Below are positions 5,179 to 54,687 of a stretch of DNA of 64,000 bases, one piece after another. This DNA is from Bigelowiella natans CCMP2755 (Eukaryota > Protista > Cercozoa): contig ADNK01000257.1 of assembly GCA_000320545.1 (NCBI GenBank), positions 39,918 through 103,917 of the forward strand, in the 5' to 3' direction. The notes under the pieces were generated by a model. It saw only the letters and a program-made list of their open reading frames with translations. It was not told the DNA's origin and ran no database searches. A program made the position numbers and the translations under genes. How positions within the stretch are numbered: the stretch's first letter is position 1; every line of letters begins with the position of its first letter.

Positions 5179-5504
5179 TGTAGCGCGTACCACTACGCGG
5201 GCACAAGTCACGTGCGACAACAAAGGGGTTGTCGCGGATATAGAATATAGATAACGTAGATATTAATACAGCATAGGCACGTGGGTTCCGGCGGGACTCA
5301 TGGCAGCACACCGGAAGTGTGCTGCCCCACGTGCGGCGGCATTCGCGAAAGCTTCGCGAATGATTACGCAGTGCACGATTTAATAAAAATATAATCTTTA
5401 ATAAAAATAAACACAACTCTTCAAAAGGAAGCAAACGTGCCTTTCCCCCCCCCTGCCTACTTGTGCACGTAGCGCCTCGGCCTGTGAACACCTTACGCGC
5501 AACA
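5179..5504 (+). repeat. 5' LTR (326 bp)
   Basis: TGTAGCGCGTA...TACGCGCAACA (11-bp terminal inverted repeat, 1 mismatch); no differences seen versus 10569-10894. Confidence 0.97.
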
Positions 5505-5509
5505 ACCTT

Positions 5510-5526
5510 TGGCTTCCACACACGGG
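5510..5526 (+). other. Candidate primer-binding site TGGCTTCCACACACGGG
   Basis: TGG start 5 nt after the 5' LTR; the reverse complement ends in ...GGAAG-CCA like a tRNA 3' end. Cognate tRNA not identified. Confidence 0.5.
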
Positions 5527-5543
5527 AAACGATTTGACTAACA

Positions 5544-8500: not shown

Positions 8501-10517
8501 TAGGACTGCAGCTGCTTTTACTACTGCTTACCGGAAGGAGAACTCTGTAGGCCTCAGCTTCGCTAAGGTGTGGGCCAAGGCTGGCCTTGATGCCCACTTC
8601 GATAACCTAATAAAGTTATGCAGCAACACCCTATTGAATGCTAAGCTAGACACTACTAGACCAGCTACCCTATGGACAGACTGGTCTAAGCTAGGTATGG
8701 CTGCTGTACTTACCCAAGACCAGCAGATCATACGGGTGTGGGGCAGGGCCTGCACAGCAGCTGAGGCCAAGTACAGCCCTACAAAAGGAGAGTATAAAGC
8801 CATGACTGAGGCGCAGAGGAAACTAAGATACTACCTGCTGTCGGTGCCCAGCTTCACCTTAATGACTGACCACAAGCCCCTCCTAGGCATCGACCGCAAG
8901 CTCGAAGCGCCTAACGATGAGTATGCAGCTATGAGGGCGGACACGGAAGAGTTTAGGGACAAGAGGACAGTGGTCTACGCACCAGGAGACAAGCAGCTTG
9001 CTGACTATTTCAGCAGGCTGTTCGAAAAGAAAGTCCCTACCCAGGTCACCCCTATGGTTAACGCGATTACCTTCGAGGACGGCGACTTCCTGCCTGAGCC
9101 AGAGGAGCTCCAGCACCTTCAAGAACACCTGGATAAATACAAACACAAGCATGAGGTACTTAGTGATAGGATATATGTATACACTAATAATGTTAGGCGT
9201 ACCTACGTGCCACGGCGGACCAGGGGAGCCCTTCTCTTTACCGCCCATGGACCTGCACACGTAGGAGAAAACCATATCACTGCTCTACTCTACCATTACT
9301 ACTGGCCCTACAAGCTAAAAGAGATAAGGACATACCTGCGTGGCTGCAGGTGCTCCAGCTTGAAGGCGGCAGGCGTCGCCACCAAGGAGTCCAGCAAGAG
9401 CCGTGCATCTAAGAAAATCAAAGCAAGGAACTTCTTAGATATCGTGCAAATTGATGTTTATAAGTACGATGGCTATCACTACCTTACCTTCGTTGATGTG
9501 GCCACTGGAAAGTGCTGGGTTAAAAAGATTATCAAGGTCAACGTTGCTAAGAAGAACAAAGGCTTATATAAGCAGAGGCTTACTAACTGCTACCGTACCT
9601 GGGAGTCTGAGCTCCAGGCTATCCCTGATGAAGTTAGCATAAACAAGATACCAAAGAAGTTACATGTGGATAATGAGACCTCTCTTCTACAGCTACCACA
9701 CCCTAATATTGATGCCTCACCTGTATACTATGCCCAGTCCAACTCCAAGGTAGAGCGACTCCACCGCACCTTGGCCAACCTAAGCAGGATAAATAGCACC
9801 ACACCAGACAAGATACAAGGGTTAGTAAACGACACCTTCACGTCTGGGGGAGGTATCAAGGATAAGGAGAGGGAAGAAGGCGACGACAACGACGACGATA
9901 CCGAGAGCGAAGACGAGAAGGTCCCGTACGATGGCCGAGTTCTAAAGGAAGGACAGTATGTTAGGGCCAAGGTAAATCTGAGATCGAGAAATAAACAAGA
10001 CCCCTTCTGGGGTGGCGTTGCAAAGGTTACCGAGAGGAAGGGGAGGAAGCAGTACTACATCTATGATGGGAACAGGGTCACCTTGCGCCACATCAGTCAC
10101 CTAAAGAATTATGATATCGGTGAGAAGCTCCTAGAGGATGTTAAAGTAAACCCTACTGTGTGGGAGCGAGCAATGCCTTGTTTAGGACCCCGACCTAAGT
10201 TCGATGTGGAATATGGAAACAATAAGGTCAGGGTGAACGACGATTGGCGCATGAAGATTGTCTATCTAGGCTACCCTGGATTACGAAATATGGAGAGGGT
10301 AGCTATGAAAATAAAGGACGGAAAATATCAGCTACTCTACCTAGCTGTTCCCGACTTACCCTTTGAGCACTGGTATAAGGTCCTGGGGGACCTTGATGCA
10401 GAGGGCTGGTATGGACACGAACCTAAGGACGAAGGTGAGTTCTGGGTAAGCGACAAAGGAGATAAGGTTAGAGAGGAATCTATTACCTGGTGGTTGGTGA
10501 AGTTCCGAAAGCGATGA
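5544..10517 (+). CDS. Gag-Pol polyprotein (1657 aa): Gag with Zn knuckle, aspartic protease, RT, RNase H, integrase, extra C-terminal domain
   Basis: CGYCSRKGKHTAKDC knuckle; LWDSGS protease; FPYGLS..YVDD RT; LWTDWS..YSPTKGE..TDHKPL RNase H; H..H..C.C, QIDV, HVDNE, SNSKVERLHRTL integrase; no frameshift or stop. Confidence 0.96.
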   Translation: MSQQLEEQQDFGSQAVQGHEQKQERKGDTDAKEGGGTPPQAPPGPAPGIKKADAAAEALENFYEADDEDVAAESKKVVMALRALRPRASNYAKLKVSIEYKYQTHDVWAAIMQDIMDYEADLPPEWAALFRNDGGLGASRGTTQSTVKQQQPVQRNTQFMSVKTAPVMITKYNGKRGEARRWWKNARSILCDFTPNPTENDKLKWLAIIKQAMDLYETGRTRIRQLEKIHTTVSGLRDVEAIMKAFVNEQDANSLPQAIRKYRAMMQHEREPVRDFATRFQDMIDELHDFNYNTGDDQARFEEFKLKIKESTYVTEKGYTTMEAAVQAISLREQEQDRKFTSPKVPGIGNINAIKPQRDWYKDREGNRRCGYCSRKGKHTAKDCRDRKEGRPRMTIRQLNEHYEKLKRKKGRGQGYNNSKWQGSNNGKNNKYKNKKQNSINAIQQQINGILDHLKQAPTKTAVPATQDQDKPMTLDDIKNLGVCNINDEDANRTIKVAMTKVKVKDSYGDYKKLPALWDSGSMPKSFISLSTVRRLGLLDQVTKKERKYAQADGSSSMKTVGELMLKLQIPGSDAETQIKTRVAMTLSMELLLGQDALEKLGGIISFYNHKIYFAKLPKKSGRTISQNMIRLDEWTSESSVNALEFMDLADNKLPTPTELRKKNPGKTIRQITELLDKTPPADDWDIDKGKKYINKILNEKYSDITKPTTKPSSKLTPVKIELKKGYEECIINDPEHRRPEADWEKIEWQINEWAKEGKIEPSNSPWNVRHVLAKKPTYPFFRLAHNFIRHNRVIKRIQTPTPRIDDVIEHVIGYKYYSSLDKNESYMQTPIHKTSRPITAFSSRHRKWHFVVFPYGLSISGDAFSSQNYRAYTHDGMASVLWVFVFVYVDDDIICTNTVVAQIFLLENIFIRFAHFGFTIRLQKCTFLATRIKWCGYYLEQGRITPNPEKVAALQQAPKPKNAKELKSFLQTAAWILRRFSPTYARTAAAFTTAYRKENSVGLSFAKVWAKAGLDAHFDNLIKLCSNTLLNAKLDTTRPATLWTDWSKLGMAAVLTQDQQIIRVWGRACTAAEAKYSPTKGEYKAMTEAQRKLRYYLLSVPSFTLMTDHKPLLGIDRKLEAPNDEYAAMRADTEEFRDKRTVVYAPGDKQLADYFSRLFEKKVPTQVTPMVNAITFEDGDFLPEPEELQHLQEHLDKYKHKHEVLSDRIYVYTNNVRRTYVPRRTRGALLFTAHGPAHVGENHITALLYHYYWPYKLKEIRTYLRGCRCSSLKAAGVATKESSKSRASKKIKARNFLDIVQIDVYKYDGYHYLTFVDVATGKCWVKKIIKVNVAKKNKGLYKQRLTNCYRTWESELQAIPDEVSINKIPKKLHVDNETSLLQLPHPNIDASPVYYAQSNSKVERLHRTLANLSRINSTTPDKIQGLVNDTFTSGGGIKDKEREEGDDNDDDTESEDEKVPYDGRVLKEGQYVRAKVNLRSRNKQDPFWGGVAKVTERKGRKQYYIYDGNRVTLRHISHLKNYDIGEKLLEDVKVNPTVWERAMPCLGPRPKFDVEYGNNKVRVNDDWRMKIVYLGYPGLRNMERVAMKIKDGKYQLLYLAVPDLPFEHWYKVLGDLDAEGWYGHEPKDEGEFWVSDKGDKVREESITWWLVKFRKR

Positions 10518-10525
10518 AGGTCTAA

Positions 10526-10568
10526 GGGAATAAGGAAGGAAGGAAGGAGCAACGTGACTTGGGGGAGG
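10526..10568 (+). other. Polypurine tract
   Basis: GGGAATAAGGAAGGAAGGAAGGAG...GGGGGAGG directly upstream of the 3' LTR. Confidence 0.8.
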
Positions 10569-10894
10569 TGTAGCGCGTACCACTACGCGGGCACAAGTCA
10601 CGTGCGACAACAAAGGGGTTGTCGCGGATATAGAATATAGATAACGTAGATATTAATACAGCATAGGCACGTGGGTTCCGGCGGGACTCATGGCAGCACA
10701 CCGGAAGTGTGCTGCCCCACGTGCGGCGGCATTCGCGAAAGCTTCGCGAATGATTACGCAGTGCACGATTTAATAAAAATATAATCTTTAATAAAAATAA
10801 ACACAACTCTTCAAAAGGAAGCAAACGTGCCTTTCCCCCCCCCTGCCTACTTGTGCACGTAGCGCCTCGGCCTGTGAACACCTTACGCGCAACA
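10569..10894 (+). repeat. 3' LTR (326 bp)
   Basis: Direct repeat of 5179-5504; the shared part of antisense ORFs 5135-5521 and 10522-10956 translates identically. Confidence 0.97.
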
Positions 10895-11063
10895 TGAAGG
10901 CAAACATCATCGGTCGGTGAATTGGGCTCTACGCACAAGCTAGCGCACAGGAGCATGTGTATTTTACCCTCATGGGCTTTGAGAAGACAGTGCTAACGTG
11001 GGATTCCGGCATGCGTGAAAATGTGACGGCGGGCAACGTAGTTGGCCGCGGTGGGACGGCAAT

Positions 11064-11398
11064 AGATGGTTTTCGCAAAAGTTTTTACAACAACTATTGG
11101 AGTAACGGAATTGCCAACTTGTAGAAATTTGTAAACTCATACGCTTTCGCAAGTTTCGACAAGTTTTTCCAATATAATTTCGGGGAAGGTGGTTTATTTT
11201 TCGGTGACAGATTTGAACTGCCTTCTCTCGAGGGAACGCCTGATGGGAAGGAAAAGGCGGCGGCAGATGGTGATGTTGGCAGTGGTTGCGGTGGCGGTGG
11301 CCAACAAGAGACAGCGACTAGACCCTATTCCCATTCCTGCTCTGCGCATCGAATCAGATCTCGAACGCAAAGGATGGAACGATGACCATTTGGTTCGG
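11064..11398 (+). repeat. Left inverted repeat (335 bp)
   Basis: AGATGGTTTTCGCAAAAG...CCATTTGGTTCGG is the reverse complement of 13280-13632, apart from a few substitutions and an 18-nt indel. Confidence 0.93.
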
Positions 11399-11780
11399 TG
11401 GTGTCGCTTCACAAGGAGTGAGATGCTCCGCATTGCACGAGCATGTCGCATTGGTCAGTGGAACTGGACCTCATCACGTGATGAACACTCGTGGCTCGAG
11501 GGCATGGTCCTCTTTTTACGTCGTCTTGCATGCCCTTGTGAGTGGGACGAACTTGTTGAGACTTTCGGTAGAAGTCCTGGATCCACATCCCGGATTTTCA
11601 AAGACGTGCTCCTTCGCATGTTTCCATCGTGTGAGGACCAGATGTGCTTGCACAGAGATCATTTGATGAACAATCTGGAACGTTTTGCAGACGCAACCCG
11701 CCGCAAAGGTGGTGAATTCTCTCAGAGAGACACCGTTGGACACATCGACGGCACAATCAGAAAGTGTTGCAGACCGACAA
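11243..11780 (+). pseudogene. Truncated, mutated Harbinger (DDE_Tnp_4-like) transposase
   Basis: CRFTRSEM..LFLRRLACPCEWDELVETFGRSPGSTSRIF..RKGG..VGHIDGTIRKCCRP matches the N-terminal half of the family. The second D and E are not found, and the frame degenerates into low-complexity sequence after ~11780. Confidence 0.8.
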
Positions 11781-12883
11781 TTACAATTGGTGCACATGCG
11801 CATGTGTGGCATGGCGCGCGCAGTGTGTCGCACGCAGCGTGTGCCTCAACCGACGTGCACGTGCGCAGTGCATGTGCACATGCGCATGCGATGCATGCAA
11901 TCACAAGCTGGCGCGCGCCACGCGATGCCGTTGCAATGCACGTCGTCGCATCGCAATTCTCATGCACAACAATTGCAGCTAGAGCCAGAATTGCAGATTC
12001 AATTGGGGCCAGAATTGTGGCCAGAATTGTGGCCAGAATCATCGCTAGAATCATGGCCGTGATTGTTGAAACATCCCACATTGCCATGTGCATGCACGGC
12101 AATCTAGCAATGCAGCCGATGCAATGGACACAGTGACAGCATGCTCAACGTGTGCATGCATGCACATGCACATGCAAAAGGTTGCTCACAAGAACAAGGA
12201 AGGTCGCCCGAGTGGATGCAGTCTTGGCATCGGCATGGTGACAGCATGCACAGTGCGCACATGACACATGACATTGCATGTCCATGATGAGGAGGATCAT
12301 GAGGACAAAAACATGTGCAGAAACAAGCAAGCCAAGGCAATTGAGGAATCCAAGGAGTCCAACTTGCACGTTGTCTGCAATTGATTCGGGTTCAGTCCAC
12401 ATCACTCTCGGTTCATCATCAATCCTAGCTTCACGATGCTTTCCATCATCGTCTTCATTGCAGTGAGCATGTTTTGCTGCATGTCGAGCTGTTGGGGTTG
12501 GGGTGACATGCACAACAAAGAAATGTCAAATCCAGAAATGAAAATAGAAGACACAGAAAAATGGGACATTCATAAAAAAGAAACATCATGTGGAATTCAT
12601 AATATTTTCATAATTTTATTGGAATCGAATTGCTATTCTATAACTTTTCCATACTATGAATGTAAATCTAGATCATCTACGAATACAAACAAAATCAAAT
12701 ATCATTCTGAAAATTTGAGGATTGCATTGTTATCTACAAAAAATATGAATATGAATAAACATGAAATTATTTGTATAGCATATGTCATTCCAACTATTAG
12801 TTTATTACATAATCATTTTCATAACAAAAAAATAAATATACAACATTTAATGACAAAACAATAAAAAAATTTAACACAGATGA

Positions 12884-13435
12884 TCAAAGCATGTTAGAAG
12901 TTTTAGAAGATATATTTGAGTGCACTCTGTCTGTAGTCCATGCATGCACAAGGTCAGGGTGAGGGGGGTTGACCTGCAACTTGGCTTCATGCTCCCTGCG
13001 TTCCCGATCACGCACCGCATCAGCTGCAGCCTTTTTTTCCTCAAGCTTTGCCTTTTCATTGAATTCCCATCGTCTGTAATCATATTCTGCAGTCTTGTCA
13101 GTGAGAGAGAGCAACACTCTCTCTAGGAATCCCCGTTGTTTCTCTTGTTCTTCACGCTGGAATTCTCGTTCCGATGTGCGATTTTCCCGTTCGAACTCAG
13201 CTTCGTTTTTCATTGCATCTGCTATGGCACTGAGTCCTGCACCGAGCGAGCTCCTGCCCCCCCTGCCAATGGAAACCCTCCGAACCAAATGGTCATCGTT
13301 CCATCCTTTGCGTTCGAGATCTGATTCGATGCGCAGAGCAGGAATGGGAATAGGGTCTAGTCGCTGTCTCTTGTTGGCCACCGCCACCGCAGCCACTGCC
13401 ATCATCAGCATCTGCCGCCGCCTTTTCCTTCCCAT
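12884..13435 (-). CDS. Chimeric ORF: transposase N-terminus (from the inverted repeat) fused to a charged coiled-coil, probably the tail of the Harbinger accessory protein
   Basis: First ~52 aa nearly identical to the transposase start, then E/R/K-rich helix (AIADAMKNEAEFERENRTSEREFQREEQEKQR). Confidence 0.5.
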   Translation of the reverse strand: MGRKRRRQMLMMAVAAVAVANKRQRLDPIPIPALRIESDLERKGWNDDHLVRRVSIGRGGRSSLGAGLSAIADAMKNEAEFERENRTSEREFQREEQEKQRGFLERVLLSLTDKTAEYDYRRWEFNEKAKLEEKKAAADAVRDRERREHEAKLQVNPPHPDLVHAWTTDRVHSNISSKTSNML

Positions 13436-13632
13436 CAGGCGTGTGGTCACCCCCCAATCTTCCCGGGGGAGAAGGCAGTTCAAATCTGTCACCGAAAAAT
13501 AAACCACCTTCCCCGAAATTATGTTGGAAAAACTTGTCGAAACTTGCGAAAGCGTATGAGTTTACAAATTTCTACAAGTTGGCAATTCCGTTACTCCAAT
13601 AGTTGTTGTAAAAACTTTTGCGAAAACCGTCT
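13280..13632 (-). repeat. Right inverted repeat (353 bp)
   Basis: CCGAACCAAATGG...GCGAAAACCGTCT; see left copy. Confidence 0.93.
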
Positions 13633-14190
13633 AATGTTCTTCATGTCACTATCTCAGCCGTTGGTAAAACCGTAGGAATACACGTGTGTGTTTGAATGTA
13701 ACCTTAGTACACGTGCCAATGCGTAGTTGCACACTTTGCTCCTTGTAACAGATAACAAGCCCGTTTTTCAGGCGTCGGAATCCTTTAGAGTTTGTCGAAT
13801 TCCTTTTGGATTTCCAATAATTCCTCGTTGTCGCAGGTAGAAAATGGGACCAGTGTTGGACACTAGGAGAGTTTTTTTGCTGGAAACGTTCAGTTGTGCA
13901 GAGCTAAGGTAGAAACCGCTGATCTTAGCTTTGGCTCGATGTACTTGATAGGTTTTGTTGTCGCAGGCTAAAATACCCCCCATTACTAAACTTGAACGAA
14001 GATCATGTTCTATTCTGTGTTCTGGATTACCGCGCAGCAATGGGTGCTCACATATACGCCCTGGTTGATACAGAAGCCGAGGAGAAAAGAGGAAGAGGCC
14101 TTGGCACACAATTGTGTGATTCGTACAAATCCCAAACAACTCTTTCTATATTGTATTCGATATTTTGGGTGGTTTCCATCTTTGTGAAAA

Positions 14191-15631: not shown

Positions 15632-18600
15632 TGCGTGTGTGTGTGTGTGTGTGTGTTTGATTAGATTTAGTTTAAAAAATATCACCCGAACATTAGCTAC
15701 TCATTAAATTGGCACCTGCACTCATTGGTAAAATCTCTGCGCCCTGTTGTGCATCTAAATGCCATAGGTTTGGGAGTTGATTTTCTTGGACCTACTGCCT
15801 CTCCAACGGTAACTCCGCCCAGCCACTCTCCCACAGGACCACCGACGTTTTACCCATCGCCTTATCCAACTCACGACCCCACGAAAGAGCCAACGCCATA
15901 TCCGACAATGGCAGTTCCTACGACGGCCTCTCCTAGTAATTCTGGAGCGACTTTGTCACCCACCAGCTCTCCGATCATAGTCACAGATGGCCCGACTATG
16001 CGTCCTACACACTATCCTACTCCGTATAGAACACCGTATCCTTCAGAGTCTCCGGTCAATGCACCAACGCCCGATCCCACCTGGTTTCCTACCGTCTATC
16101 CTTCCCCAGATCCAACAGCATACCCGTCTGCCTCACCGACTCCCCCCCCCTCAGATTTCCCAACAAAGAGCCCTACCGAGTACCCATCGGCCGCGCCAAC
16201 ACACAACGTTGTTTTGCTTAATGCTGATGATAAGGCGCTGCAACAAAATGACACAAACGTTTTCAGAGACTCTTCCTCATCCTCCTCCTCCTCCTCCTCC
16301 TCCTCCTCCTCCTTTTCTCACTCTTCTCCTGTATACTTGCAATCTTGCCGCCGCGACACCTGGGAGAGCATGCCCAGCTGGGCAAGAATTCCGAAATATA
16401 AGACCGACAAGAGTTTGAACACAACTTCGCTTATTCAAAATATGAATGGCTATAGAGCTCAGATCCCAAGAATGGGTATTATTTGGACGTACAACAAACA
16501 GGTGGATTGTCCCTACAAAGAGAGTGGCTTGAAGGTGCATCGAATTTCATTTTGCTGTCATGAGAGTGGAACCTCAACGTCTTTTGATTCTCAGAATTGG
16601 CACAATAGGAAAACATGGGGGGGGGAACTCCCAGCAAGAAACGAGGATGTGACGATCCCAAGAAAAACAAAGGTTATATTGAAGGTTCCCTTGTTCATAT
16701 ATATGTTGATATTGTTAAGTATTCACTTCGGAACTCGTATTTGCCAACATGATATAGATACAGATTCTCAGTGCTTCCAGTTGTCAAAGCCTTGCTGATA
16801 CTCTGGATATATTACTATTCATTTCCTCTACAGGTTCTAATCAGCTCTTGCTCTTTATTGGATAGCTATGGGAAGATTATCATCCCAGAGGATTCTGAGC
16901 TCATATTCAGTGACGCGCCAATCAATTTGCGAACAAAAGGCATTGATGTACATGGAAAGCTGAGAATCGGTGGAGAGAATTGTCGCATTCGGAACAAGAT
17001 AACCATCACCCTGTACGGGTCTCGCTCCGGTAGAGACGAAAAGGGCATTATTGCTTTCAACGGATCAACACTAGACATGCATGGGATGATGTATCAGCCT
17101 AGCTGGGCGGCTCTGGCAAAGACCGCAAACAAAGGCCAAAAGGTTGTGTGGCTTCAACGCTGCGTTGGATGGAAGAAGGGCACCGAAGTCGTACTTACTA
17201 CCACCGAGTTTAAAGACTTCCGAGGCCACAACTTCAACGAGAAGGCTGTGATTGCAAAGAACCAATGCAAGGGCGAAAGGGTGAATGGAAAGCTGCTCAA
17301 ATTCGGAAGGATCGTTTTGAAAACTAAACTCAAATACGGACACTACGCGGCGAAGGACGAGTATCAAGCTGAAATGGCCGTTCTCTCCAGGCAGATTCTG
17401 ATCCAAGGGGACTCCGAGGACTCCCTACCCACTGACACAGAAAAGCCTGTTTGTAACAAGGGCGATTTCGGACAGCGAATGCACAACGAGTTTCCGTGTA
17501 AATCAACACACCTTACAGGTTACGGTGGACATGTGCGGGTCGAAGGTAACGCTGTCGGGCGCATTTCTTCAGTTGAATTCTTCCGTATGGGACAGACCAA
17601 TATCAAGGCGAAGTACCCGCTACACTTCCATAGGATGAGAGACGCTGGAAGGTCGTCGTATGCAACGGATAATGCAATTCACCAGTCGTTCTACCGCTGC
17701 ATAGTCATCCACGGAACCAACTATCTCACGGTGTCGCGCAATGTAGCATTCGATGCCATCGGGCAGTGTTTCTACATGGAGGGCGGTAATGAGGAGTACA
17801 ACACTATCTCCTACAATCTCGCCGCGCATATCCATCCAATTGGCCTTCCTCCGATGTTCAACAAGCAGGAGTTTGAGGACGTGTTTGAGACGAGCTCCCT
17901 GAGGCAACCTGCCGATATATCCGCCTCTCCCTTCTACATCACAAACCTGCAAAACGAGATCGTTGGCAATTCTGCGGTGGGAGGCTGGTCCTCCTATGCC
18001 GTTCCAACGCTCCCAAACGTGATTGGGCAAGATCGTGTGAGAGACAAGAATGTCAAGCCGTACAAGCGAGCCACCTTATTGTTTGACGGGAATATGGGCC
18101 GATCTAGCGGATATTGGAGTAAGTTAGGAGGCTGTATGTATATCGGTGGGTTCCTAGAGGAGAGGGAGAGTGACAGGAAGCTAGTGTACAATGGAGGGAG
18201 GAATATGATACCGAAGAGCATCAATGGAGGGAAGCGCGCTTCTCGTGATCCTGAGGACGAGAACGGTAAAAATATCTTCAACTACTACTCCAATATAAAA
18301 CTCGCACTATGCAGTGTTGGGGCTACTGATTGGAATTTGCGTGGTCATTGGAGCAACATCGATATCTACGATCAGTTGGATCGATCCTTCAACGTATTTG
18401 GCGAGGTGAGCTTTACTTCTACATCCGTAACGTGCCGCACCCAAAATGGTAATAGCCTCCAGAACGTGTCGGCACAGGGACTGACAAACTTTGAGAAGCG
18501 GTGGGGCTCCAAGGACTACATGGCCTTTCGCATGTACGACACTAACCAGAAACATCTTATCGACGATATGCAAATCAGGAATTGCAACCCCAAAAGCAAT

Positions 18601-19713
18601 CCAATCAAAAAGAAAAAAGCTCGCATCTGGGCAATTCCGCTCGGTTCCAGCATCCAGCAGTTCCAAACCATCATTACGAACATCACCTACGTGGATCCGG
18701 TTTGGCCAAATGCCCTCGTTGCGTGGACAGTTGCTAAAAAGTCTCGGTTCGGCATCTACTTCCTCAATTTTCTCGATGCCGATGGCTCAGCGACACTCCG
18801 CGGAAGTCCAACGATAGTAGGCCCCACAGGCCAGGTAGAGCCGAATAAACTGGGGGTTGTGAACAAAGACCCGAACCTGTGGTGGAAAACAACGCGGAGC
18901 AATACGAAGGGCTGCGACTGGAGACCCAACTACTACCTGCCTGTTTATCTGTGCGATATGAACGACCACTTCATTGCTTCAGTCGAGCTCTTTGTCGGAA
19001 AGAAGAACCTGCACGCAGAATCAATGTGGGATGATCATATTGGCTACGCTGCGCATTGGGGGGACAATGACCTCCTAAAGGATGGAGTTCCACTAAGTGG
19101 CGATCCGCAGATTGTCGGGCCTTTCGAGCACACCCAAGAGGGAGGGTGGTTCGTGCAGTACAACGGGGGAGCGCCGAAGGTACTGGAGATTATGAACATC
19201 CAAGTTCCGCATGATAAGACCCTAATGCTGGCGATTTCCTATCCTAAAAGCACCACATTCACAGTGATTGGATGCAGGGGCAGAAACAATAAATGTGAGG
19301 AGAATACGCGGACTACTGGGAAGAAGAAGAAGTTGACACGGGTCGGCAGCATCGCTAAAGTAAGAAAAGGACGAGGGTGCAACTACTACTTCGACAGCGA
19401 AACAGGGTATCTTTACATTCGGCTCGTGGCAGTGAATCAACGAACAGTAAATGCGCTGTGGGATAAGATGTCAGGAGAAGATTTCAATTACCATTATGAC
19501 AAGAACACGGGGGAGTATGGGCCGGAAAAGACGACAACCTTCAATGTAAATGGAGGGAAATATGGCATTCCTCACAGAAGTGGTATGAACTACTTTATAT
19601 CAATTCAAGCAAGCTGCTCTTCAAAGGATGGAAACTTCTGCAGCGCTGATCCTATGACGAGAATCCCACCAAAGATGGCGTGCGGAGAGGCCAAGACAAT
19701 CTCCGGTTGTTAA
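14191..19713 (+). CDS. Type II membrane G8-domain / parallel beta-helix protein (TMEM2/CEMIP/fibrocystin-like), multi-exon
   Basis: TM helix YIAICSVLVSVLAILVATYVV, P/T/S-rich stalk (15790-16200), G8 (IIIPEDSELIF..IDVHGKLRIG..ITITLYG), GGHV..EFFRMGQ..KYPLHFH..IHGTN..FYMEGGNE beta-helix motifs in the long 3' exon. Confidence 0.88.
15519..15655 (+). repeat. Compound intronic microsatellite (TA)n-(GA)n-(GT)n, representative of dozens in the window
   Basis: Visible; similar tracts at 24446-24495, 26905-26980, 29717-29810, 34190-34270, 42060-42145, 56765-56850, 63568-63638. Confidence 0.95.
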
Positions 19714-26930: not shown

Positions 26931-26983
<53 letters not shown>

Positions 26984-27228: not shown

Positions 27229-28587
27229 GTTTTCTTAGCCTATCATCAAGCAAACAAAAGAGGCCATTCCTATTTTATACTTGGATAATATATACACAAT
27301 AGAGGGGAGGAGGGAGGGAGAGGGAGGAGGCTGTAATCAACACTCGTGGCGTTGTAACACACCACCTACTCCTCCCCCTCCTCCACCTGTTACTATTACT
27401 CTTATCAGGCAGTGCCAGATGCCGATGGGGGTATTCAACATGGGCGACGAAAACAAATGGGCGGGGAGGCTGGAAGTTAAAAATCCGGTGCTGCTGCTGC
27501 TACTGCTACTGCTATATAATATACACCGCTCATTGCTGCGACATCATTAATAACGATGGAATTCACGTTTTTGCTGCACTCTTATTGATAGGCTTCTAAG
27601 GGCGGGAGAGACGCCAGCCATGATAAATGTACGCCCCAGAGGGTGTCTGTTCATGCAGCTAAGCGTAATAAGTAAGTGCGAATGTGTAAGGAGAAGGAGG
27701 AGGAGGAGGAGGAGGAGGAGGAGGAGGAAAGCTAGGCAACAATAGTTTCAGCACGGGAACGATGCTTTATTTCTCTTGCGACTTCCATCTTGCATGCCAT
27801 CTCATTCCGACAACGACGTTGAAAGCAGCCGATATTACATATACATTTCTGATTGTCAATTTGTATTATAATGCTCGCAGGTGGGTCATGTGCTGCAGCC
27901 CTAACAATGCGAAGATATACTTCGATCTTAAGAACCCGTTGATTGCTTTCTGGTGCGTGAATTGCCATTGGTTTTGTTATCCTCGTACCGTCGAAGAATA
28001 ATGGCATAATTCAGTTGAAAATACTGCGATTTTAGTCCTTTTGGTGTCTTCCTGAGGGATTGAAGCTTTTCCTTCTTTTTATTTGATTTTATATTGCCTA
28101 ACTTATTGGATCAATGCGTGATTATTTTGGCTAAAATATTCAGGTCAGCAGCAATAGACAGAGATGCCGAAAAGCCTAGGATTCTCGTACAATTTAACTG
28201 GTAGCAAAGATACGTCTCTCACGCTTATATAAATGCTGCTGCTTGTAGTACGTATATATATGCAATCAAGTAACAACCGGCCTCTTTCTCACTGCTTTCG
28301 TCGTATGTTGTCAGGATGTTCACGCAGAGAATTACAGCATCAACTTACTCTCTTCTACAGAAAGCATCCACTTTAAAAGAACTGCTCGATGGAATGGTCA
28401 TAACTCCTTTCTCATGATTCTCTATCCTACGCTGTCTTTGAGTTTGTTTTTGGTGTCATAGTCATTCCTCCTCATACTGAAAAAATGATAACAACTTCAG
28501 AAATCCCAAAAAGCCGACATTGAGAAGGAAATCGGAGGCAGCGCACCTATAGATGAGCTTCTCAACACCTTTTCGTACAAAAGTTAG
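24329..28587 (+). CDS. Tandem Tudor-domain protein, multi-exon; 3' extent uncertain
   Basis: VLAFYKHEKIYYPAVV..VQYLGY (Tudor 1) and VYARYAEEEQLWYHARITG..YNVRFSGF (Tudor 2); further plausible exons continue to a TAG at 28585-28587. Confidence 0.62.
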
Positions 28588-28679
28588 TTACTTAAAATGA
28601 AGACTGCAAGCTTTGTGAGATGTATGAGCTGCCAGTGGAGAGCAATGTGCGATATGATGCATCGATTACGAGGGTTTCA

Positions 28680-29713
28680 TTTGCATTGATTAATAACAAC
28701 ACGTCGATCTTGCACAGCACGCACATGTGATGCGATGTTCACACACGTACAAGCTACACGTAATGGCGTGGCATGAAAATGAAATCAATGGCCTGGCGCA
28801 GCCTGCGGGGCCATGAGGCATCGCAATGTACATGCTAGCATGACAAGCATGCTTGTCATCATCGCTCAGCGCTACTTAGGACTTAAACTTGACTTGCGTC
28901 AGACTTGTTCATCTTGGTGTCGCACAATGATTTCATCATCGATTGCACGTTTGGTTGCAAAGCATTGTGTTCATCTGTAGCCATGCAAATTGAGTGTTGT
29001 TGTTAAAGGCTGTGTTGATCATGCATGAGCATTCAGCGAAGACAGTCATCAGAGCTGTCTGGCGATGCGCACAATGCCAACTGTGCAGGTCAATCAGTTG
29101 TGTTTAACCATTGCAACAGCGATCACGCATGTGCACGTTCTTCTCTGCGTGTTCTTTCTTTTTCGTCACTGAACGATGAAATGATGTTCATCACTTTCTG
29201 AAATGTTCGCACGCATCTAGTAGCTTGCATTGCTGAGAAAGCACTTTCAAAATTCTTTCGCGGGTCAGTGCCACATCAGGATGATTGTTCGTCATGCCGT
29301 GCACCGTTAGCCATGTGTTCAGGGCCTTTTGAATTCTTCGAGAGCCTCACAGGTACTTGCCCATTCTCTAGCACACTGCCCTCATGTGGCAGCAGGCAGC
29401 AGCCACATCAGGATGGGGTCGAAAGAAAATGCATGTGTTGCATTTACATGATGAGAAAACGTTGGCATTGCTGCTTCTGCTCACTGATGCACACCATTGT
29501 TGTTGCATTCCTCCTCACTTTCCCACTGTCGGGATGGACGTTGCGGAACAAGTGGAATGTCCAAGTGGAATGGTCGACGTCACATTGTGAGAATTAGGAT
29601 GAAGACAGCAGAGAGCAGAGGAATGATGCAACTCCCAAGATCCGTCACCTTCAAGCGATCCACCATCCTTTGCATCGCATCGGTTTGCAGTGTGCAAAAG
29701 AGAGAGATGGAGA

Positions 29714-29757
<44 letters not shown>

Positions 29758-32700
29758 TAGCTCGCTCGCTCGCTCGCTCTTTCCTCCCTCCCTTCCTCCC
29801 TTTCTCTGCAATTCCGTCGAGTGCCAAATCAACAATGCACCAAAGACATCCAACAAATCAGTGATGTCGAAGCCACCAGACGACAAGTTGCTCCGACGGT
29901 TCATCGAGACGCACAATCTCATCACGAGCACACGCGATTGCTGGGTGGTGCTAGAGCACTGTGCAAGGCAGTAGCTTGGCTTTTCGCATTTTGATTTCTT
30001 CGCGGCAAAAAGGTGCTTCGATTGCAGTGGTGATCTAGATTTTCATTGGGTTGGTTGCAGCGCACATTGCTTGCTAGCCAGGTAGCATGGCACACGATGA
30101 TGTGAACATTTCTAGATTGCCACACAACGACGAGTCATTCGCATGAAATGAAACGAGATCCAGACAGTTCGACTTCAAAAGGACGTCGACAAATGCGGTT
30201 TTGATGCCTGGCATCCTTCATGTCAAACACACCGATTTCAGCAACAATTAGAAGCATCACTGTAACGTCGTGCTTCCCTCTTTTCCATTGAAGACCGCCA
30301 TTTCATTCTCATATCTGATTTGGTCCATGTTAGCTTTCTCAATGTATGGTTGTCTCTCTTTTTCAGACAAACTCTTCCAAGCCTGGCCCACCAGCTTGAC
30401 AATTTCCGTATGCGCTCTGTGCGAATAGCACCTTCGAAAGTGAGAGATTTTGTGCTCGAAAAAGAAGATGTAACTATTCCTCGACTTTTTGGGCCTGAGA
30501 GCCTGGAGGGACTTCCTTTTACGTTTCCTCCTTTGCCTTCTTCTTTCCTTCTTCGCAACTTTGAAAAATTGCTCCTTGCTCTCCTTTGTTGCAAGATCCC
30601 ACTTTTTTTTTGTGAGTATGTCAATGCCAGGCTCGAAGATGTTCGGGTGGTTGGATCTGATCACTGGTCGATATTTTTGGAAGAAGTAATGTAGAGCGCA
30701 GTCTTCAAGGCTCTTGTCCTTGAAACAAGGTGTTTTGCTCTTCCTTTTGATGAATCGCGTTTTCACTTTAGCAGTGATAATTTCTGATGCTTTTTTTTTA
30801 GACAGCCCAACAACTTCCGTCTCGCCTAAATTTCGAAGGTAGCGCAACTGCTTCAATGTTGCATACTCATACTCTCCTGACTCCTTTGAATGTATTGCTG
30901 TCCTACCATTACGTAATTTCATTTGAAAGCTTCTACTGGTGTCATAATGCCTCTTTCGAATTTCTTTAACTCTCTCAGCCTTTGCATTGAGACGGGCCTG
31001 CGCCTTTTTCACACTGCCAAACTTGGTTGAAGCAACTCGTTCTAAGTTGGTTCGCAAGAATATCTTTGCAGGATGAAAGCCTGGATTTTTCGGATTAGGT
31101 ACACGGCAAAATATTTCATCCTTTAAGTCATGTGGGCACAACCCCAGCTGGAACCACGCTGCTTGTTGCGACAGGAACTTTTCTCGTCCCTTCTGTGAAA
31201 AAATGCAACCATGGCAGACTCCATCTCCATGAATCCAATGCAAAGCGTGAGGCTTGTGGCACAAGTTGCATAGGTCCAAGTTTGGATTCCGCTTCAAGAG
31301 CCACAAATTAGCCTTGACAAATTGCAATTCTCATCAGTACGAACATGTGCAAGAATTTAACAATGGGACCGTTTTGTGGACGTAGATCAGCCTGCATTTT
31401 GTTCTGTGATATTGCACAAATTCTCTTTCGAGGACGACATTAGTAAATTGATCCGCAACATAAGAAAACTGTGAAAAGTTATAGATTGCTTTGTCTTTCA
31501 CAAAATCGTCTACAATTTTCTTGAAATCAAACCGCCCTGCATGATGAACATGTCCATCTGCTTTGGTTGGAATGCACAGACCGGTTAGTGGGCACTTTGG
31601 AGCTTCATTGAGAGACCTAAACCCATCTAAAACTTCATCTCGAAAAGCAAATATGTCATCCAGCGTAGCCTGCCTTGCGGCTCTACGAAACTCCATGGGC
31701 ACCTTCATGGACTCTGAAATTTTCTTTGTTGGAGGTTCAGACGACTCAAGTGGATAATGATTTTTTGGATCACATTCTTCATGATGCCATCTAATCGCTA
31801 CGAAGTTCGCTTTCATTTTCCCATGAAATTTCGAACGTCTTTTGATTCCAACCCTCATGTGTCCTTTCTCAATGACTTCATCACAAGATCCACAGATGCT
31901 GCGATTAGATCGTGCCTTTTCGATCATCCTGCAGAAGCCAGCATGCTTCGGGAGTTTGATCGAATCGAAATGCTTTGTGGACATGCCTTTTGGTCTCAAT
32001 TGTGTCCTTTGGAATGTGAAAAACCCGTTTCATCTCACAGATCTTCTTCTCACCAGGAGATCATGACTCGGTCGACGTTCGTGACCAGTGAGACTCGAAA
32101 GACCCCAACTCGTCAGTTCATTTCACTCCAAGAAGAAGCAATTGATGTCCAAAGTCTGAGATGCCACGCATTTGAAAATGGTCTGTGGTGTCATGACCCT
32201 GTCATGGTGGTCATGGCGGTGGTCATGGCTTGCCACGAACGTTTGCCAAACCTCGAACAATCATCACAGTGCGACTCAGAAAATGTGACCAGCTTGGTGC
32301 ATTTGGCCTCCGTTTGCTGTGAAGTTCCCACGGCGTCCTCTTGTTCGTGCTGTTGCCTTCAAACGGTTGTTTGCTGTGTGCTTGCGCGTGCAGTTTTTGC
32401 ATCAATGCGAAGTTCAGTGTTCAATGTTCAGTGTTCAATGCTTTCCCAAGTGTTGTTGAAACACCTTTTCTTCTTCTTTCTTTCTGTTTTTGCCGAAGAG
32501 CGCGTGACTCAAGTGGGTGAACTGGCCTGGTTGTTCTCAGACTTCGGTTTCGTTCTGCACTCATGAAACCGAAGAACATCGGGCCAGAATTTGCAATCTG
32601 CCATGATGGACATGCAACACACTGTGCATGCAAGACATGCAACACACTGTGTGTGCAATGCACATTGTGCATTGCTGTGTCTGTCATTGCCTTCGAGGCA

Positions 32701-33660
32701 CTGCGTTTCGAACACTGCAAATGTCAGTTAGAACCTGGACACATTCCAACTGTGCCAACAATTGACAGACAATTCACCTGGCCTCAACTCGTCATCCCTG
32801 GCTTCCTTGGATGCAGGGTGTTGGCCAGTTGTGTCAGCACTCACCACCAACAGGGTGCTGACAAGTCCTTGCAATGATTGTTGTTGAGGCTCTGCTGCGT
32901 GCATGTGCCTGTCTCCCATGTGGTTCTGGCGCATGCAGATTTGATCAATGCTTTGTTCATTGTTCATTGTTCATTGTTCATTGCTCAGCTCACAACACGA
33001 TGAATCACGGTGTCACGCTCGCAAAGTCCAACTGCACCCTCCACACTGCTAGACTGCTGCGGCAATGCACTCCGCTTAACCCACCACTGGTGTCATGAGT
33101 CGAATTGAGCAAGTGTTTCGTGAATTGAACGTGAATTCTGTTTCCTCCTCCATTCACTCCACTCGGTCTGCAGCGGTGGCAATTTGCCTTCCCTTTGGTG
33201 AGTCAAACCGGATGATGGTCAGCTCAACTGTTCAGTGGCAAGTTTCTTTTTTCCTGCTGAGTCCGCGACACGTCTGGTTTGTGCGAGTGTGTGTGGCTTG
33301 GCTGTGCGCGCAGAGCAGCGCAGCAGCAACGAGTCATCGATCGCACAATGATCACATTCACGTTTGTGCAAGCATGCGTTTTTGCGTCGCAGCATGGCTC
33401 GTGTTCTGCTTTGCTCGTGCTGTGCACGAATGGCTCAAACGTGCACGTGCACGCGCTGCCACTGTGAACGTGTGGTGACCTGGTGATTCACAATTGGGTG
33501 TGATCCATGATCCAAACGATGATCACAATCAACAACCACTCCTCTGTCCGAAACACACAAGAAACAATGCGAGTGCACAGACAAGATGGAGATGTGATCG
33601 CATCTGTCGGCAGCAGCACCCGCTCCCTCTCGATGACAACTTCTGGAACTGAACTTTCCT
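28680..33660. other. TpA-depleted island between two convergent gene ends, containing decayed sequence and one intact-looking gene
   Basis: TpA strongly depleted at 28740-30240 and almost absent at 31908-33662; normal TpA within most of the 30257-31750 coding region. Confidence 0.85.
30257..31984 (-). CDS. Two-exon (31984-31370, 31312-30257; ~556 aa) protein: PARP-type Zn finger + DCL/HNH-like domain + XPA-like Zn finger/XPA_C-like region + HMG box
   Basis: The two listed ORFs are in frame and joined by a 57-nt GT..TACTGAT..AG intron, giving RLIYVHKT|ANLWLL. Motifs: IEKARSNRSICGSC..IEKGHMRVG..WHHEEC; CPLTG..HVHH..F..YH; C-x2-C-x14-C-x2-C then NPKNPGFHPAKIFL..FGS; RPKKSRNSYIFF..GQAWKSLSEKERQPY. 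Confidence 0.75.
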
Positions 33661-33661
33661 G

Positions 33662-34186
33662 CTATCCTCCTCTCTCGACATTTGATCCTCCTCCCATTTT
33701 GTCGATAGATCTAGATTCATCATTGTCATTATCACCCCTGCCATGGTCTTCATCATCAGAGTCATCATCCTTTTCGCCAATATCCACATATTGAGAGGCG
33801 CCCCTCAAGAACGATTCCAGATCTTCTGGCTCATCATCCTCTTTTAGCTTCAATGCTGCAATGGCTTCCTCAGTGATTTCTTTCAGATTTGCCGATGGTG
33901 CTGCATCTTGGATCAGCTTGTGCTGGAGAGAAAGCTCTTCTTTGAACCGGATATTTTCCTACAAACGTGGTCAAAGTAGCATTTAGATTTTGATAAACTG
34001 TTGTTGAGGGGGGGAGAGGGAGAAGGGGAGGTTAAGAAATAAATCTATGATCTGTAATCAGGATGGTAGTTAGGGACAACAGACAGAAGATAGCCATTGA
34101 AATATTCCCGCAAGCTTCTTTGCTCTTTCTTCCAGGTCCAATTCCCCGACGACTTCGGGTAATAGGGATCGATAGAGCTGTCGAAT

Positions 34187-34252
<66 letters not shown>

Positions 34253-36262
34253 GTGTGTGTGTGTGTGTACATATAAATAATTAATGAATACATTATAGTC
34301 CCATGCGAACATTGTTTTGTGCTACTACCTTCACGATGCAAACTGGACACAGCTGCACAGCATTCTCAAAGCAATTTGGCCCTTAACGATCAATATACTT
34401 TATTATATTTGTATTTGAACGACAGTGATCCTTCAAGTCGTCATGCAGGATCCCCCCTTCCCCCCCCTCTCTTACGTTAGTCGTAATCATACCCCGCTGC
34501 TCGATGGTGTCCTCAATTGGAGGGTAAAATTGATCGAGCACGTCGTTCTTTTCCCAGTCCTTACTCCGCTTGGGAGGGTAGTATATTTTATATTTATCCA
34601 TCCATTCCTGCAATGAAGAAAAGCGAAACAAAATTGGCGACGACCGATGAATTTGTCGAAGAGCGTCGTGTTGGGCCCGATTAATGTTGGGTAATGTTGA
34701 TGTTTGTAGATACCGCAAACCTTTTCTCTTCTTTGGTCTAATCCCCCCCCCCTCATTCTATTATGCTCGGTTGCTTACTACCTCATGCTCCTGCTGGGTG
34801 AGGAGAGGGTCCTTATCTTCAATCGGATCGGGAATGTTCAGCACACACGGCGTGTACCATGAGCATGGAATCTATAGCGTCGTTGTAGTAGTGGTAGTAG
34901 TAGTAGTAGTAGTAGTAGTAGCAGCAGCAGCAGGAGGAGGAGGAGGAAGAGGAGGAGGGGGGGGGGGGACAAAATATATGTATGCAGAATTAGCAATTGC
35001 CTCTTTTACACTTACGTTGGTACAATCTGGCAGTAGTTGTGATAATGATAACAACTGCTAACCCACATTGTGGTAGATTCGACCCTCACCCCTACTACCC
35101 CTGCCCCCCCCCACCCGTGACGAATAGATAGATGAATGGATGGATGGGTGCTGTGTCGCAGCACCTGGACTCCGAGAAGGTCTAACACGGATCGCACGGT
35201 TGCGCAGAGAACCTCTCTAATGTCCTCTAGGCGGTCTGCTAAACCCATTATCACCTAAGGAGATATGTAGTCAATGTTGGACATTGACAACAAAGACATG
35301 TAAAAACTCGGCTCTTTCCCACTCACGTACTGCATTCACCACATATCTCTGTATTATTCAGCCATAAAACACATGTACCCATTTGAAGTGGACAAATCAT
35401 AACAAAAACAAGCTGCCTATATTTATGTAACATTTATGTTTAGACATAGAGAGAGAAAGGTAGGGGGGGGGGGGGGGGGGGAGGGAGAGAGTACAATAGG
35501 TTTAATTATCTAAAGTACAGCATAATATTGATACCACAGGAAGCTTCCTGGAAAAGGAGCGCACCGATCGATTGCGGCAATTCCTATTCTCATACCTAGA
35601 TAATCATTTCAAGAGAGCACATTCAGCCTAAATTTCACCATCACCACCAGCTATCACCATCAGATCCATTTGACCATCATCATCACCGCCATCATCATCA
35701 TCATCATCATCATCGTTATTGCTAATTATTTCTATTCTTCATCGGTTGCAGTAATCTCCGAGTTGGGAACACGATAAGCGGCGGTCTCATAGTTGTTTTA
35801 CACATAAATGATGGATACAAAACAACTGGAAACTTGTTCTCCGCGGCATCATAACATCAATGACAACAGCAATTACAACACGGTAATCATCATGATATGT
35901 GAGGTCTTGCTTTGTTTGTTCAACTATGATTCTTTGTACAAGGCATAAGGTGTGAGAGCGAGCATCCCAAACGCGTCCTGAAGGATCAAGGAGGACGAGA
36001 GGAGGAGGAGGAGGAGGAGGAGCATTGCAATACGCACAATCATGTGACATCAGCAAACATTAAATGCATGTAAAGATACTAGGTAACATGAGTCAGCTCT
36101 CTTCATCAAGTGATAATACTGACATCACAACGCTATCGGGCGCTACACCTCCCCCTCTTCTTCCCCTCTCACCTCTGGCAGCTCGGATTTTAGAAGGGGT
36201 AATAGTTCCGGAGAATACTTTTCTTTGTATCCAGGAAATGATAGATGATATCCTAACAGATT

Positions 36263-53145: not shown

Positions 53146-53847
53146 TCATTGAACGCTGCTAACCTGTTCGTAGATGGAGTTCGTCCACTTTCCTGGTTGG
53201 AGGACAGTGTAGAATGCCAACCTCGAATACGTTACGTTCTCGTAGTAAGTACGTTCAGGATCATGGAGGAAATATTCCGTTCGTGTTCCCAGAGCACCTT
53301 TCACTGTGGTACATCCAGAAACCATTAGGGCATGGCCCCCTCCCTTTTCCCACATGATTATGGGCATCACAGGGCGTCCAGACATGAGAGTTTGCTGCAG
53401 CTGAGTCTCCGTGATCAATCCGTCGACCTTAAAGGTGCGACTAATATACTCATTTGCAACCTTTCCAATTGTCTTGACGTCCTCCCCATCAGCGCCACAT
53501 CCCCTGTGCTTGTTGTACGGGCAACACTGTGTGTGCAGATCCGTCGACACGACGTCACATTCGACGCTTTCACAAGTCGCGTTCGCGCCAGTTACTCCGT
53601 AGTAAAACGCCATCTCGGAAATACCTGTAGCCCAGCACCAGTCCATCCCCTGCTGCTTGCACGCGGGCATCTTTGGGCGGAGGTCGATCGAACAGTTGGC
53701 CGGCAGCTGCGTAAGATTGCGATGCTCGTCGAACACTCTCTCAAAGTTCTTGAGATATCGGGCAGCTTCATCTTTGGAGAACCTGACGCCAGGGCCGACA
53801 GCGAGTGCCAGAGCGGGTAAGAAGGTGGTGAGCAATATGTTCACCAT
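53146..53847 (-). CDS. Intronless secreted papain-fold cysteine protease (AvrRpt2/C39-like), 233 aa
   Basis: Signal peptide MVNILLTTFLPALALA; QQGMDWCWA (Cys), GGGHALMVSG (His), LHDP (Asp). Confidence 0.8.
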   Translation of the reverse strand: MVNILLTTFLPALALAVGPGVRFSKDEAARYLKNFERVFDEHRNLTQLPANCSIDLRPKMPACKQQGMDWCWATGISEMAFYYGVTGANATCESVECDVVSTDLHTQCCPYNKHRGCGADGEDVKTIGKVANEYISRTFKVDGLITETQLQQTLMSGRPVMPIIMWEKGGGHALMVSGCTTVKGALGTRTEYFLHDPERTYYENVTYSRLAFYTVLQPGKWTNSIYEQVSSVQ

Positions 53848-54687
53848 TTCAGATGAGTCCACCAGAAGATGATGGTGCTCTGCAACAGTCGCGACTAAGA
53901 CAGATCTCGAACCATCGTTGTTTAGAATTACATACCATTTGTAAACAAAGATGATGTATTTTTGTTGTCGCAACATCTAAAATATGTTGCCTTTTGTTGT
54001 CGCAGTGTTCACAATTGCCTCGTATTTTTGCTTTCAGAAGAGTGCACCGGCTATGTACATTGATAATTTGATGCAGCGGCAGATGCATGCTTGAAATTCA
54101 CCATCAAGGCACGCACGCGCATGCTTCACGAATGCAACGTTTAGTCCCGAAAAACCACCGCCAGCTGTAGTTCCATGCTAGAATGTGGAGTCATCATGCA
54201 GCACGTGGCACCGAATGTCGAAAGCTGTGTCACTTGATCGGTTTGCAAAAACATGCAAAGATTTGCAACTACTGCATGTCATTAGCGTCATTGGCGAAGT
54301 TTTGCATCTGTATTTCTGTGGAAGGCATAATTGGCGATTAACACATGTGACCAAACGTGCGTTGCAGATTGTCTGATTGTGCTTACTCAGAAATCACAAC
54401 AACGTACGCACTTGTGTCTCCTACATGTGTGCGATGTTATCTGGACGCTAGCTGATGTAGCTGCGACTAATCATCACGGCAGCAATGTACAGCGTGCGAT
54501 ACTCGGCATGATGAGATTTTATTAAAAATGAAATACGCATTTTCCGGCGTCGTCACATTTGTTTATATTTTCCCGGGGTAGAGCATGAAGCAGATTTCTG
54601 CTTTGTGAGATCTTACACTCTTGTGGAGAATATATTCTTTTATACTTCAAATACCTATGGACAGCTCGCAACGCTTGCTGATGAGAT

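Follow-up and report, generated by a model that had tools for sequence, protein, structure and literature searches.

TpA depletion around an expressed zf-PARP/HMG-box gene of Bigelowiella natans: a probable product of TpA hypermutation

Introduction

A 64,000-nucleotide stretch of the Bigelowiella natans CCMP2755 genome (GenBank assembly GCA_000320545.1, contig ADNK01000257.1, positions 39,918 to 103,917 of the forward strand; hereafter the window) contains an expressed gene for a protein with a PARP-type zinc finger (zf-PARP) and an HMG box, the end of a neighbouring host gene and, between the two, 1755 bp from which the dinucleotide TpA (TA) is almost absent. This interval, called the void below, is rich in TG and CA, and it is probably the product of the TpA hypermutation process described in B. 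natans.

That process was reported by Mettrop et al. (bioRxiv 10.64898/2026.01.13.699255, 2026) as a hypermutation of integrated viral DNA that targets TpA. Of the 302 nuclear point mutations seen in 15 mutation-accumulation lines of B. natans RCC623, 231 lay in a 186-kb insert from a nucleocytoplasmic large DNA virus (NCLDV) and a 25-kb virophage insert, where the mutation rate was about 1000 times the background. All but one of these (230/231) were A→G/T→C changes, essentially all at TpA (TpA→TpG, or TpA→CpA where the other strand was affected). The background mutation spectrum of the species is AT-biased. Genome-wide, 124 clusters of TpA-depleted, CpA+TpG-enriched 1-kb windows were found, and the authors proposed that an ADAT2-like protein (putatively Bn78255) deaminates adenine in DNA as a defence against foreign DNA. 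A literature search returned no further paper on TpA hypermutation.

An initial reading of the window made from its letters alone (the sequence-only reading) had proposed a region-targeted conversion of TpA to TpG and CpA on both strands, and knew of no characterised pathway for it. The conversion has been demonstrated in the mutation-accumulation lines, and at this locus the polarity of strain differences, mosaics of TG and CA and an unchanged CpG content agree with it; the process had, however, already been described. The locus therefore does not reveal a new process. What it adds to the preprint is the host-gene setting, a depletion that the sister species shares, a gene body that is spared and an extended context rule.

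Results

The locus and its genes

The features of the locus are listed in Table 1. The zf-PARP/HMG protein carries its PARP-type zinc finger at residues 21–79 and its HMG box at the C-terminus; it thus combines a PARP1-like DNA-break-sensing zinc finger and an HMG box with about 400 residues without an assigned family. Its matches in the PDB are confined to the PARP1 zinc finger and to HMG boxes. A search of 5.8 billion proteins returned relatives from Bigelowiella only, in two clusters: a 90% cluster, which includes a 221-aa EukProt member identical to part of the gene, and a sister cluster at 65% identity from Bigelowiella longifila. A viral origin of the gene was considered and set aside, with no relative in IMG/VR. 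Its single intron and genus-restricted distribution could hint at late acquisition, and an ancient foreign origin could be envisaged.

Two transcripts, L001 and L003 (JGI copies of MMETSP data), cover the gene and are at least 99.7% identical to the window, the spliced intron set aside. The neighbouring gene lies on the same strand, with exons spanning 37864–33662, and is matched by the transcript contig L004 at 97–100% identity per exon. Its upstream exons and introns have a normal TA level; only its last exon is depleted, to approximately position 33960. The void consists of 77 nt of coding sequence (CDS) and the 278-nt 5' untranslated region (UTR) of the zf-PARP/HMG gene, approximately 1.33 kb without transcript evidence, and at least 65 nt of the neighbour's 3'UTR.

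The sequence-only reading had named an assembly or base-calling artefact as a possible source of the void. Over 30077–32262 and 33597–33958 the window is 99.7–100% identical to transcripts assembled from other strains; because these independent transcripts reproduce both edges of the void, the edges are not an artefact of assembly.

Table 1. Features of the TA-depleted locus and of the second island (positions in the window; O/E, observed-to-expected ratio)
Feature	Position	Strand	Remarks
Whole TA-depleted, CA+TG-enriched island, 5.5 kb	28500..34000	.	ATA/TAT-class TA O/E <0.35 throughout
Partly converted 3' flank of zf-PARP/HMG gene	28700..30076	.	22–23 TA left, 0 in ATA/TAT context
3'UTR of zf-PARP/HMG gene	30077..30256	-	Transcript ends 30119 (L001) and 30077 (L003); 3 TA
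zf-PARP + HMG-box CDS, 556 aa, expressed	30257..31984	-	One 57-nt GT..AG intron at 31313–31369; TA O/E 0.35–0.45 in all codon phases
5'UTR of zf-PARP/HMG gene	31985..32262	-	Transcript starts 32262 (L001) and 32255 (L003); 0 TA
TpA void	31908..33662	.	3 TA/1755 bp; intergenic spacer + UTR ends of two minus-strand genes + first 77 nt of CDS
Void core, presumed promoter + intergenic DNA	32263..33596	.	No transcript evidence, no Pfam/Rfam match, no second copy within window
(TTGTTCA)x5 tandem repeat inside void	32953..32987	+	Five copies
Minimal 3'UTR of upstream neighbour gene	33597..33661	-	Transcript contig L004 ends at 33597
Last exon of 16-exon host gene	33662..33958	-	TAG stop 33664–33662; TA O/E ~0.4
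Second island, same signature	11000..12500	.	Inside 342-bp inverted duplication; scrambled TG/CA tracts, e.g. 12149–12176

Composition of the void and of the island

Exactly three TAs occur in the void (32729 in TTAG, 33050 in CTAG and 33077 in TTAA), the number that the sequence-only reading had counted against an expectation of roughly 100. From the local base composition (A 378, T 501, C 452, G 424) 108 are expected, or 84–91 if this figure is scaled by the window's usual TA O/E of 0.78–0.84. The Poisson probability of three or fewer is 3e-32, and the lowest TA count among 2000 mononucleotide shuffles of the void was 83. The void region holds the three longest runs without TA in all 64 kb (823, 586 and 321 bp; the mean gap is 17 bp), and gaps longer than 336 bp were found in the window for no dinucleotide other than TA.

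The O/E ratios of the void are 0.03 for TA, 1.73 for TG, 1.76 for CA and 0.73 for CG, the last against 0.80 in the background, so that the earlier impression of abundant TG and CA with plentiful CpG holds. Compared with the background, 88 TAs are lacking while TG and CA are in excess by 72 and 57; the joint excess of 129 is of the same order as the deficit and matches it in kind. CG differs by only −7 (80 seen, 87 expected at the background ratio, rho), far from a CpG depletion matching the gain of TG and CA. Since CpG is not depleted, the extra TG and CA do not stem from CpG decay. The void holds 210 TG and 171 CA, a pattern compatible with an edited A after T on either strand, A→G and T→C looking alike at the palindromic TA. 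TG and CA are about equally frequent in every segment of the island, and there is consequently no sign of a transcription-strand bias.

The void forms the core of a 5.5-kb island poor in TA and is its most strongly depleted part. About 85 TAs are left in the whole island, whose left border is gradual (28.5–29.0 kb) and whose right border is sharp (approximately 33960–34000). The void had been described as ending at the TAG stop of the neighbouring gene. The corresponding CTA does stand at 33662–33664, and a weaker depletion runs on beyond it. An (AT)17 microsatellite at 34219–34252 lies past the right border. CDS, intron, UTRs and untranscribed spacer are all depleted. In 250-bp windows TA O/E is mostly 0.3–0.5 over the body of the zf-PARP/HMG gene (range 0.20–0.67) and 0.06–0.46 over the 3' flank (28.7–30.1 kb). 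The gene body is only about half depleted: by codon phase, TA O/E in its CDS is 0.35 (positions 1-2), 0.42 (2-3) and 0.45 (3-1), against 0.75 in a control gene.

Long open reading frames (ORFs) occur in the void because the TAA and TAG stops are absent there; a Pfam search of six ORFs from the void and its flanks gave no match. An Rfam scan matched nothing in the void, returning only a weak snoRNA (E 0.046) in the neighbour's last exon and a spurious set at 34.2 kb, where a (CA)n(TA)n(TG)n palindrome lies, and a tRNA search found none. Terminal inverted or direct repeats of the kind that border transposons were sought and do not bound the 28.5–34 kb island, and less-mutated paralogues of the void were sought within the 64-kb window and not found, even in a purine/pyrimidine-reduced alphabet.

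Context of the surviving TAs

Among the 25–26 TAs that survive in non-coding parts of the island, none belongs to the ATA/TAT class (A before or T after), which makes up 54% in the background; for the 3' flank alone the absence has p = 4e-8. The survivors are instead over-represented in CTAG (8-fold), TTAA (3.4-fold) and GTAC (2.5-fold). The second island shows this bias as well (1 of 9), as do the gene body (O/E 0.28 versus 0.48) and B. longifila (p = 5e-4), and an ATA/TAT-class O/E below 0.35 marks exactly two islands in the window, at 11.0–12.5 kb and 28.5–34.0 kb.

A comparison can be made with the de novo mutations of Mettrop et al. In our hand tally of the scaffold 10 TpA hits in their Table S2 (n = 206), the base 3' of the edited A is T in 67, A in 67, C in 52 and G in 20. 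The disfavoured G (20/206) fits the survival of CTAG, and TAG/CTA is scarce among these de novo hits. The ATA/TAT effect may reflect a preference for A at −2 or for T at +1; the entries tallied from Table S2 come without the −2 base.

Direction of change

The sequence-only reading had called for the direction of substitution to be established, and differences between strains bear on it. In 2.1 kb, eight single-nucleotide polymorphisms (SNPs) distinguish the reference from the transcripts of two other strains, and three of the eight affect a base of a TA (odds ratio 10.9, p 0.007). When the three strains are rooted with B. longifila, the SNP at 31898 is a TA→CA change with the derived allele in the reference, and that at 30258, in the stop codon, is a derived TAA→TGA change, B. 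longifila having TAG. The third, at 30893, is ATA→ATG as a minority allele, replacing Ile by Met in the strain behind L001. The sample is small; the two changes that polarise run from TA to CA or TG, that is, A→G/T→C at TpA.

Alternating pyrimidine–purine tracts of at least six units also differ between the islands and the rest of the window. Outside the islands they are pure (TA)n, (CA)n or (TG)n. Inside they are mosaics of TG and CA, such as CGTGTGCATGCATGCACATGCACATGCA, with 32 CA, 31 TG and one TA among their units, which is what random conversion of (TA)n would yield. The TTGTTCA repeat inside the void, which had been read as four copies at 32953–32980, is real, with a fifth copy that extends it (Table 1); its descent from (TTATTTA)n, suggested in the sequence-only reading, would be hypothetical.

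The Bigelowiella longifila orthologue

The B. longifila transcript L002 has a CDS identity of 77% with the B. natans gene, and blastn finds no alignment to the window for the 118 nt at its 5' end. Its TA content is as low as that of the B. natans gene (TA O/E 0.36 overall), and its first 250 nt, unalignable 5'UTR included, hold a single TA; the unalignable 118 nt are themselves TA-free. TAs common to both species number 27 of 52–56 (52%), the lowest share among the dinucleotides examined, and 60–70% of the non-shared TAs face TG or CA in the other species. Since stretches too diverged to be aligned are free of TA in both species, TA is read as being removed continually in both lineages. Orthologues that are also TA-free had been named beforehand as an observation that would refute hypermutation. 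The B. longifila gene is indeed TA-poor; yet with a UTR that has diverged and is still free of TA, the orthologue points to an old, persistent process rather than against hypermutation.

Other features of the window

The second island lies inside an inverted duplication with arms at 11060–11401 and 13277–13636, which are 97–98% identical except for an 18-nt indel and each start the same ORF (MVYFSVTDLNCLL...). In the interior, 11.25–12.5 kb is TA-depleted with scrambled TG/CA tracts, and 12.5–13.0 kb is AT-rich with nearly normal TA. The arms show approximately seven differences, one of them TA↔CA, and are uninformative for polarity. The 'Harbinger' label given to the ORF at 11.2–12.1 kb in the sequence-only reading was not confirmed, no Pfam match appearing even at E ≤10.

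An intact Ty3/gypsy-type retrotransposon occupies 5179–10868, with a 1657-aa gag-pol ORF at 5544–10517 (protease, reverse transcriptase, RNase H and integrase zinc-finger matches). Its long terminal repeats (LTRs; 5179–5478 and 10569–10868) are 300 nt long and 100% identical; the element is young and lies 18 kb from the void island. Its TA O/E of 1.0–1.3 is untouched, and the depleted second island begins about 200 bp past its 3' LTR. Being a transposon is therefore not sufficient, or else the process needs time.

A compound palindromic microsatellite, (CA)n(TA)n(TG)n, lies at 34186–34275 in the last intron of the neighbouring gene, just outside the island, and is the source of the spurious miRNA-family Rfam matches; similar (TA)n(TG)n arrays stand at 26933–26982. 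These arrays could be ordinary repeats, or (TA)n eroded from its ends by conversion of TA to CA and TG.

Elsewhere in the window, an intron-free ORF of 980 aa (16771–19713) encodes a CEMIP/G8 beta-helix protein, whose closest relatives, at 60–61%, are B. natans Bigna1/126502 and the JGI transcript L005, probably paralogues within the species. A 276-aa ORF at 53146–53976 on the minus strand has a weak match to Peptidase_C70, the AvrRpt2-like papain-fold cysteine proteases (E 1.8e-4, 21.9 bits against a cut-off of 19). The candidate enzyme Bn78255 is not encoded in the window.

Discussion

The void is probably a product of the TpA hypermutation described in B. natans. Here, as in the regions studied by Mettrop et al., the change runs from TA to TG and CA on both strands, acts regionally and recurs, and it leaves the same footprint of low TpA with high CpA+TpG in the same species. 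Their window criterion (a TpA rho of at most 0.43 together with a CpA+TpG rho of 1.52 or more, per 1-kb window) picks out the locus: TA O/E is 0.02 over 32001–33000, CA+TG reaches 1.5–2.1 in 250-bp windows, and qualifying 1-kb windows are present at every offset tested. The void is far more saturated than their NCLDV region (O/E 0.03 here against 0.45 there), and their targets are viral inserts, whereas the gene around which this locus lies is expressed, contains an intron and has a B. longifila orthologue.

Several observations weigh against assigning the void to this process. Mettrop et al. define a cluster as at least three consecutive qualifying windows, and here no more than two follow one another, whichever of 20 offsets is used; the 124 published clusters would therefore not include the locus, though it bears the same signature. 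In the preprint the process is presented as directed against foreign DNA, and no viral or transposon homology was found at the locus. The de novo rates are those of the viral-insert regions, and at 28.5–34 kb the process is read from its footprint and from strain differences. The deaminase chemistry of the conversion is putative. The sequence of the void centre (32263–33596) comes solely from the reference assembly; independent DNA or RNA for it was sought with peptides in metagenomes, with 30-mers and in two exact-ORF look-ups, and none was found. Finally, synonymous and intronic TAs in the gene remain at an O/E of approximately 0.45, which a uniform island-wide rate does not explain. The flanks have lost far more of their TAs than these sites, so the rate must differ over distances of less than a kilobase.

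On the mechanism favoured here, the A of 5'-TA-3' on either strand would be changed to G, so that each TA becomes TG or CA. The most likely route would be deamination of adenine in DNA to hypoxanthine, which pairs as G; since TA is its own complement, a T→C change by way of a modified thymine is also conceivable. The process would have acted on the locus repeatedly, before the split of B. natans from B. longifila and again after the B. natans strains diverged, and most strongly in the non-coding DNA beside the zf-PARP/HMG gene. TAs in ATA/TAT contexts would be lost first and those in CTAG last, and the halved loss in the gene body would be due partly to purifying selection and partly to a lower rate there. 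Candidate marks of the 5.5-kb domain are a chromatin state, a small RNA or a past foreign origin.

Two other explanations deserve consideration. In the first, selection keeps the spacer and UTRs free of TA for functional reasons, such as the avoidance of TATA-like sites, of UA-cleaving RNases or of insertion by TA-targeting transposons, and ordinary mutation supplies the changes. An orthologue as TA-poor as that of B. longifila, with a similar profile along the transcript, is also expected under such selection and so counts against hypermutation, and the TA loss is greatest in the non-coding flanks and milder at synonymous sites, as selection of this kind would have it. It is less easy to see why selection should refill the deficit specifically with TG and CA, or why it should affect transcribed and untranscribed DNA, intron, CDS and part of the neighbour's last exon alike. 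A second island with the same signature occurs in unrelated DNA, derived TA→TG/CA alleles segregate among strains, one of them non-synonymous, and a TpA-specific mutational process has been demonstrated experimentally in B. natans (bioRxiv 10.64898/2026.01.13.699255). Selection against TA is accordingly considered improbable.

The second holds that the DNA, possibly once foreign, was hypermutated in a single burst before the two species separated, and that the void has merely been inherited, with no action at present. The sharing of the depletion with the orthologue agrees with this, as does the gene itself, which has one intron where its neighbour has 15 and relatives only in Bigelowiella, as a late acquisition might show. 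CDS identity between the two species, however, is only 77%, and part of the 5'UTR can no longer be aligned and is nevertheless free of TA; the AT-biased background spectrum should by now have rebuilt many TAs through TG/CA→TA changes. Two or three derived TA→TG/CA changes also separate present-day strains. An ancient burst without later action thus appears unlikely.

Methyl-CpG decay or an assembly or base-calling artefact is largely refuted and very improbable, for although CpG deamination yields TG and CA and the void centre is backed by one assembly, CpG stands near its background level, CpG decay would leave TA in place, and RNA-derived contigs of other strains repeat the TA-free sequence at both edges.

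Among known mutation systems, repeat-induced point mutation (RIP) of ascomycete fungi resembles the present case in being a regional, dinucleotide-specific transition hypermutation with a strong compositional footprint, thought to disarm invading DNA. It acts in the reverse direction, changing C to T mainly at CpA and so creating TpA, and it needs duplicated sequence, whereas the DNA here is single-copy within the window. RIP was rejected as an explanation: TpA is lost rather than in excess, and a second copy was not found in the window. RIP also requires a premeiotic stage and DNA cytosine methyltransferase-like enzymes; to our knowledge, a sexual stage has not been implicated in the TpA process of B. 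natans. The APOBEC/AID enzymes likewise provide context-specific, clustered hypermutation of DNA that is used in defence, but they convert C to U (C→T), the wrong base and the wrong direction.

The direction seen here is matched by the adenosine deaminases ADAT2/ADAT3 (Tad2/Tad3), TadA and ADAR, whose conversion of A to inosine gives A→G. The natural tRNA substrate of ADAT and TadA is A34, which follows the invariant U33, and fungal mRNA editing and the ADARs also favour a 5' U. This preference for a 5' U matches the TpA rule, and Mettrop et al. argue alike. These enzymes act on RNA, and their action on nuclear DNA would be a departure that is hypothesised here.

A broader proposal may be put forward tentatively, with rather less than even confidence: that TpA hypermutation in Bigelowiella is not confined to recognisably foreign DNA. 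On this proposal the process may persist at a locus, keeping a native intergenic domain around a conserved, expressed gene for a chromatin protein TA-free for longer than B. natans and B. longifila have been separate, with a wider sequence preference (ATA/TAT fastest, CTAG slowest) and with the gene body spared at a sub-kilobase scale. The rewriting of TpA to TpG and CpA in chosen regions of a eukaryotic genome is a rare kind of programmed mutagenesis, and the locus offers a compact, saturated, single-copy example beside an expressed host gene, together with an orthologue comparison and a context rule. It bears on whether the target is really foreign DNA, on the age and persistence of the targeting, and on the wider sequence preference of the enzyme. 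If the proposal is true, a process that persists at a locus in native DNA would imply that a heritable chromatin or RNA signal, and not the origin of the sequence, is its guide.

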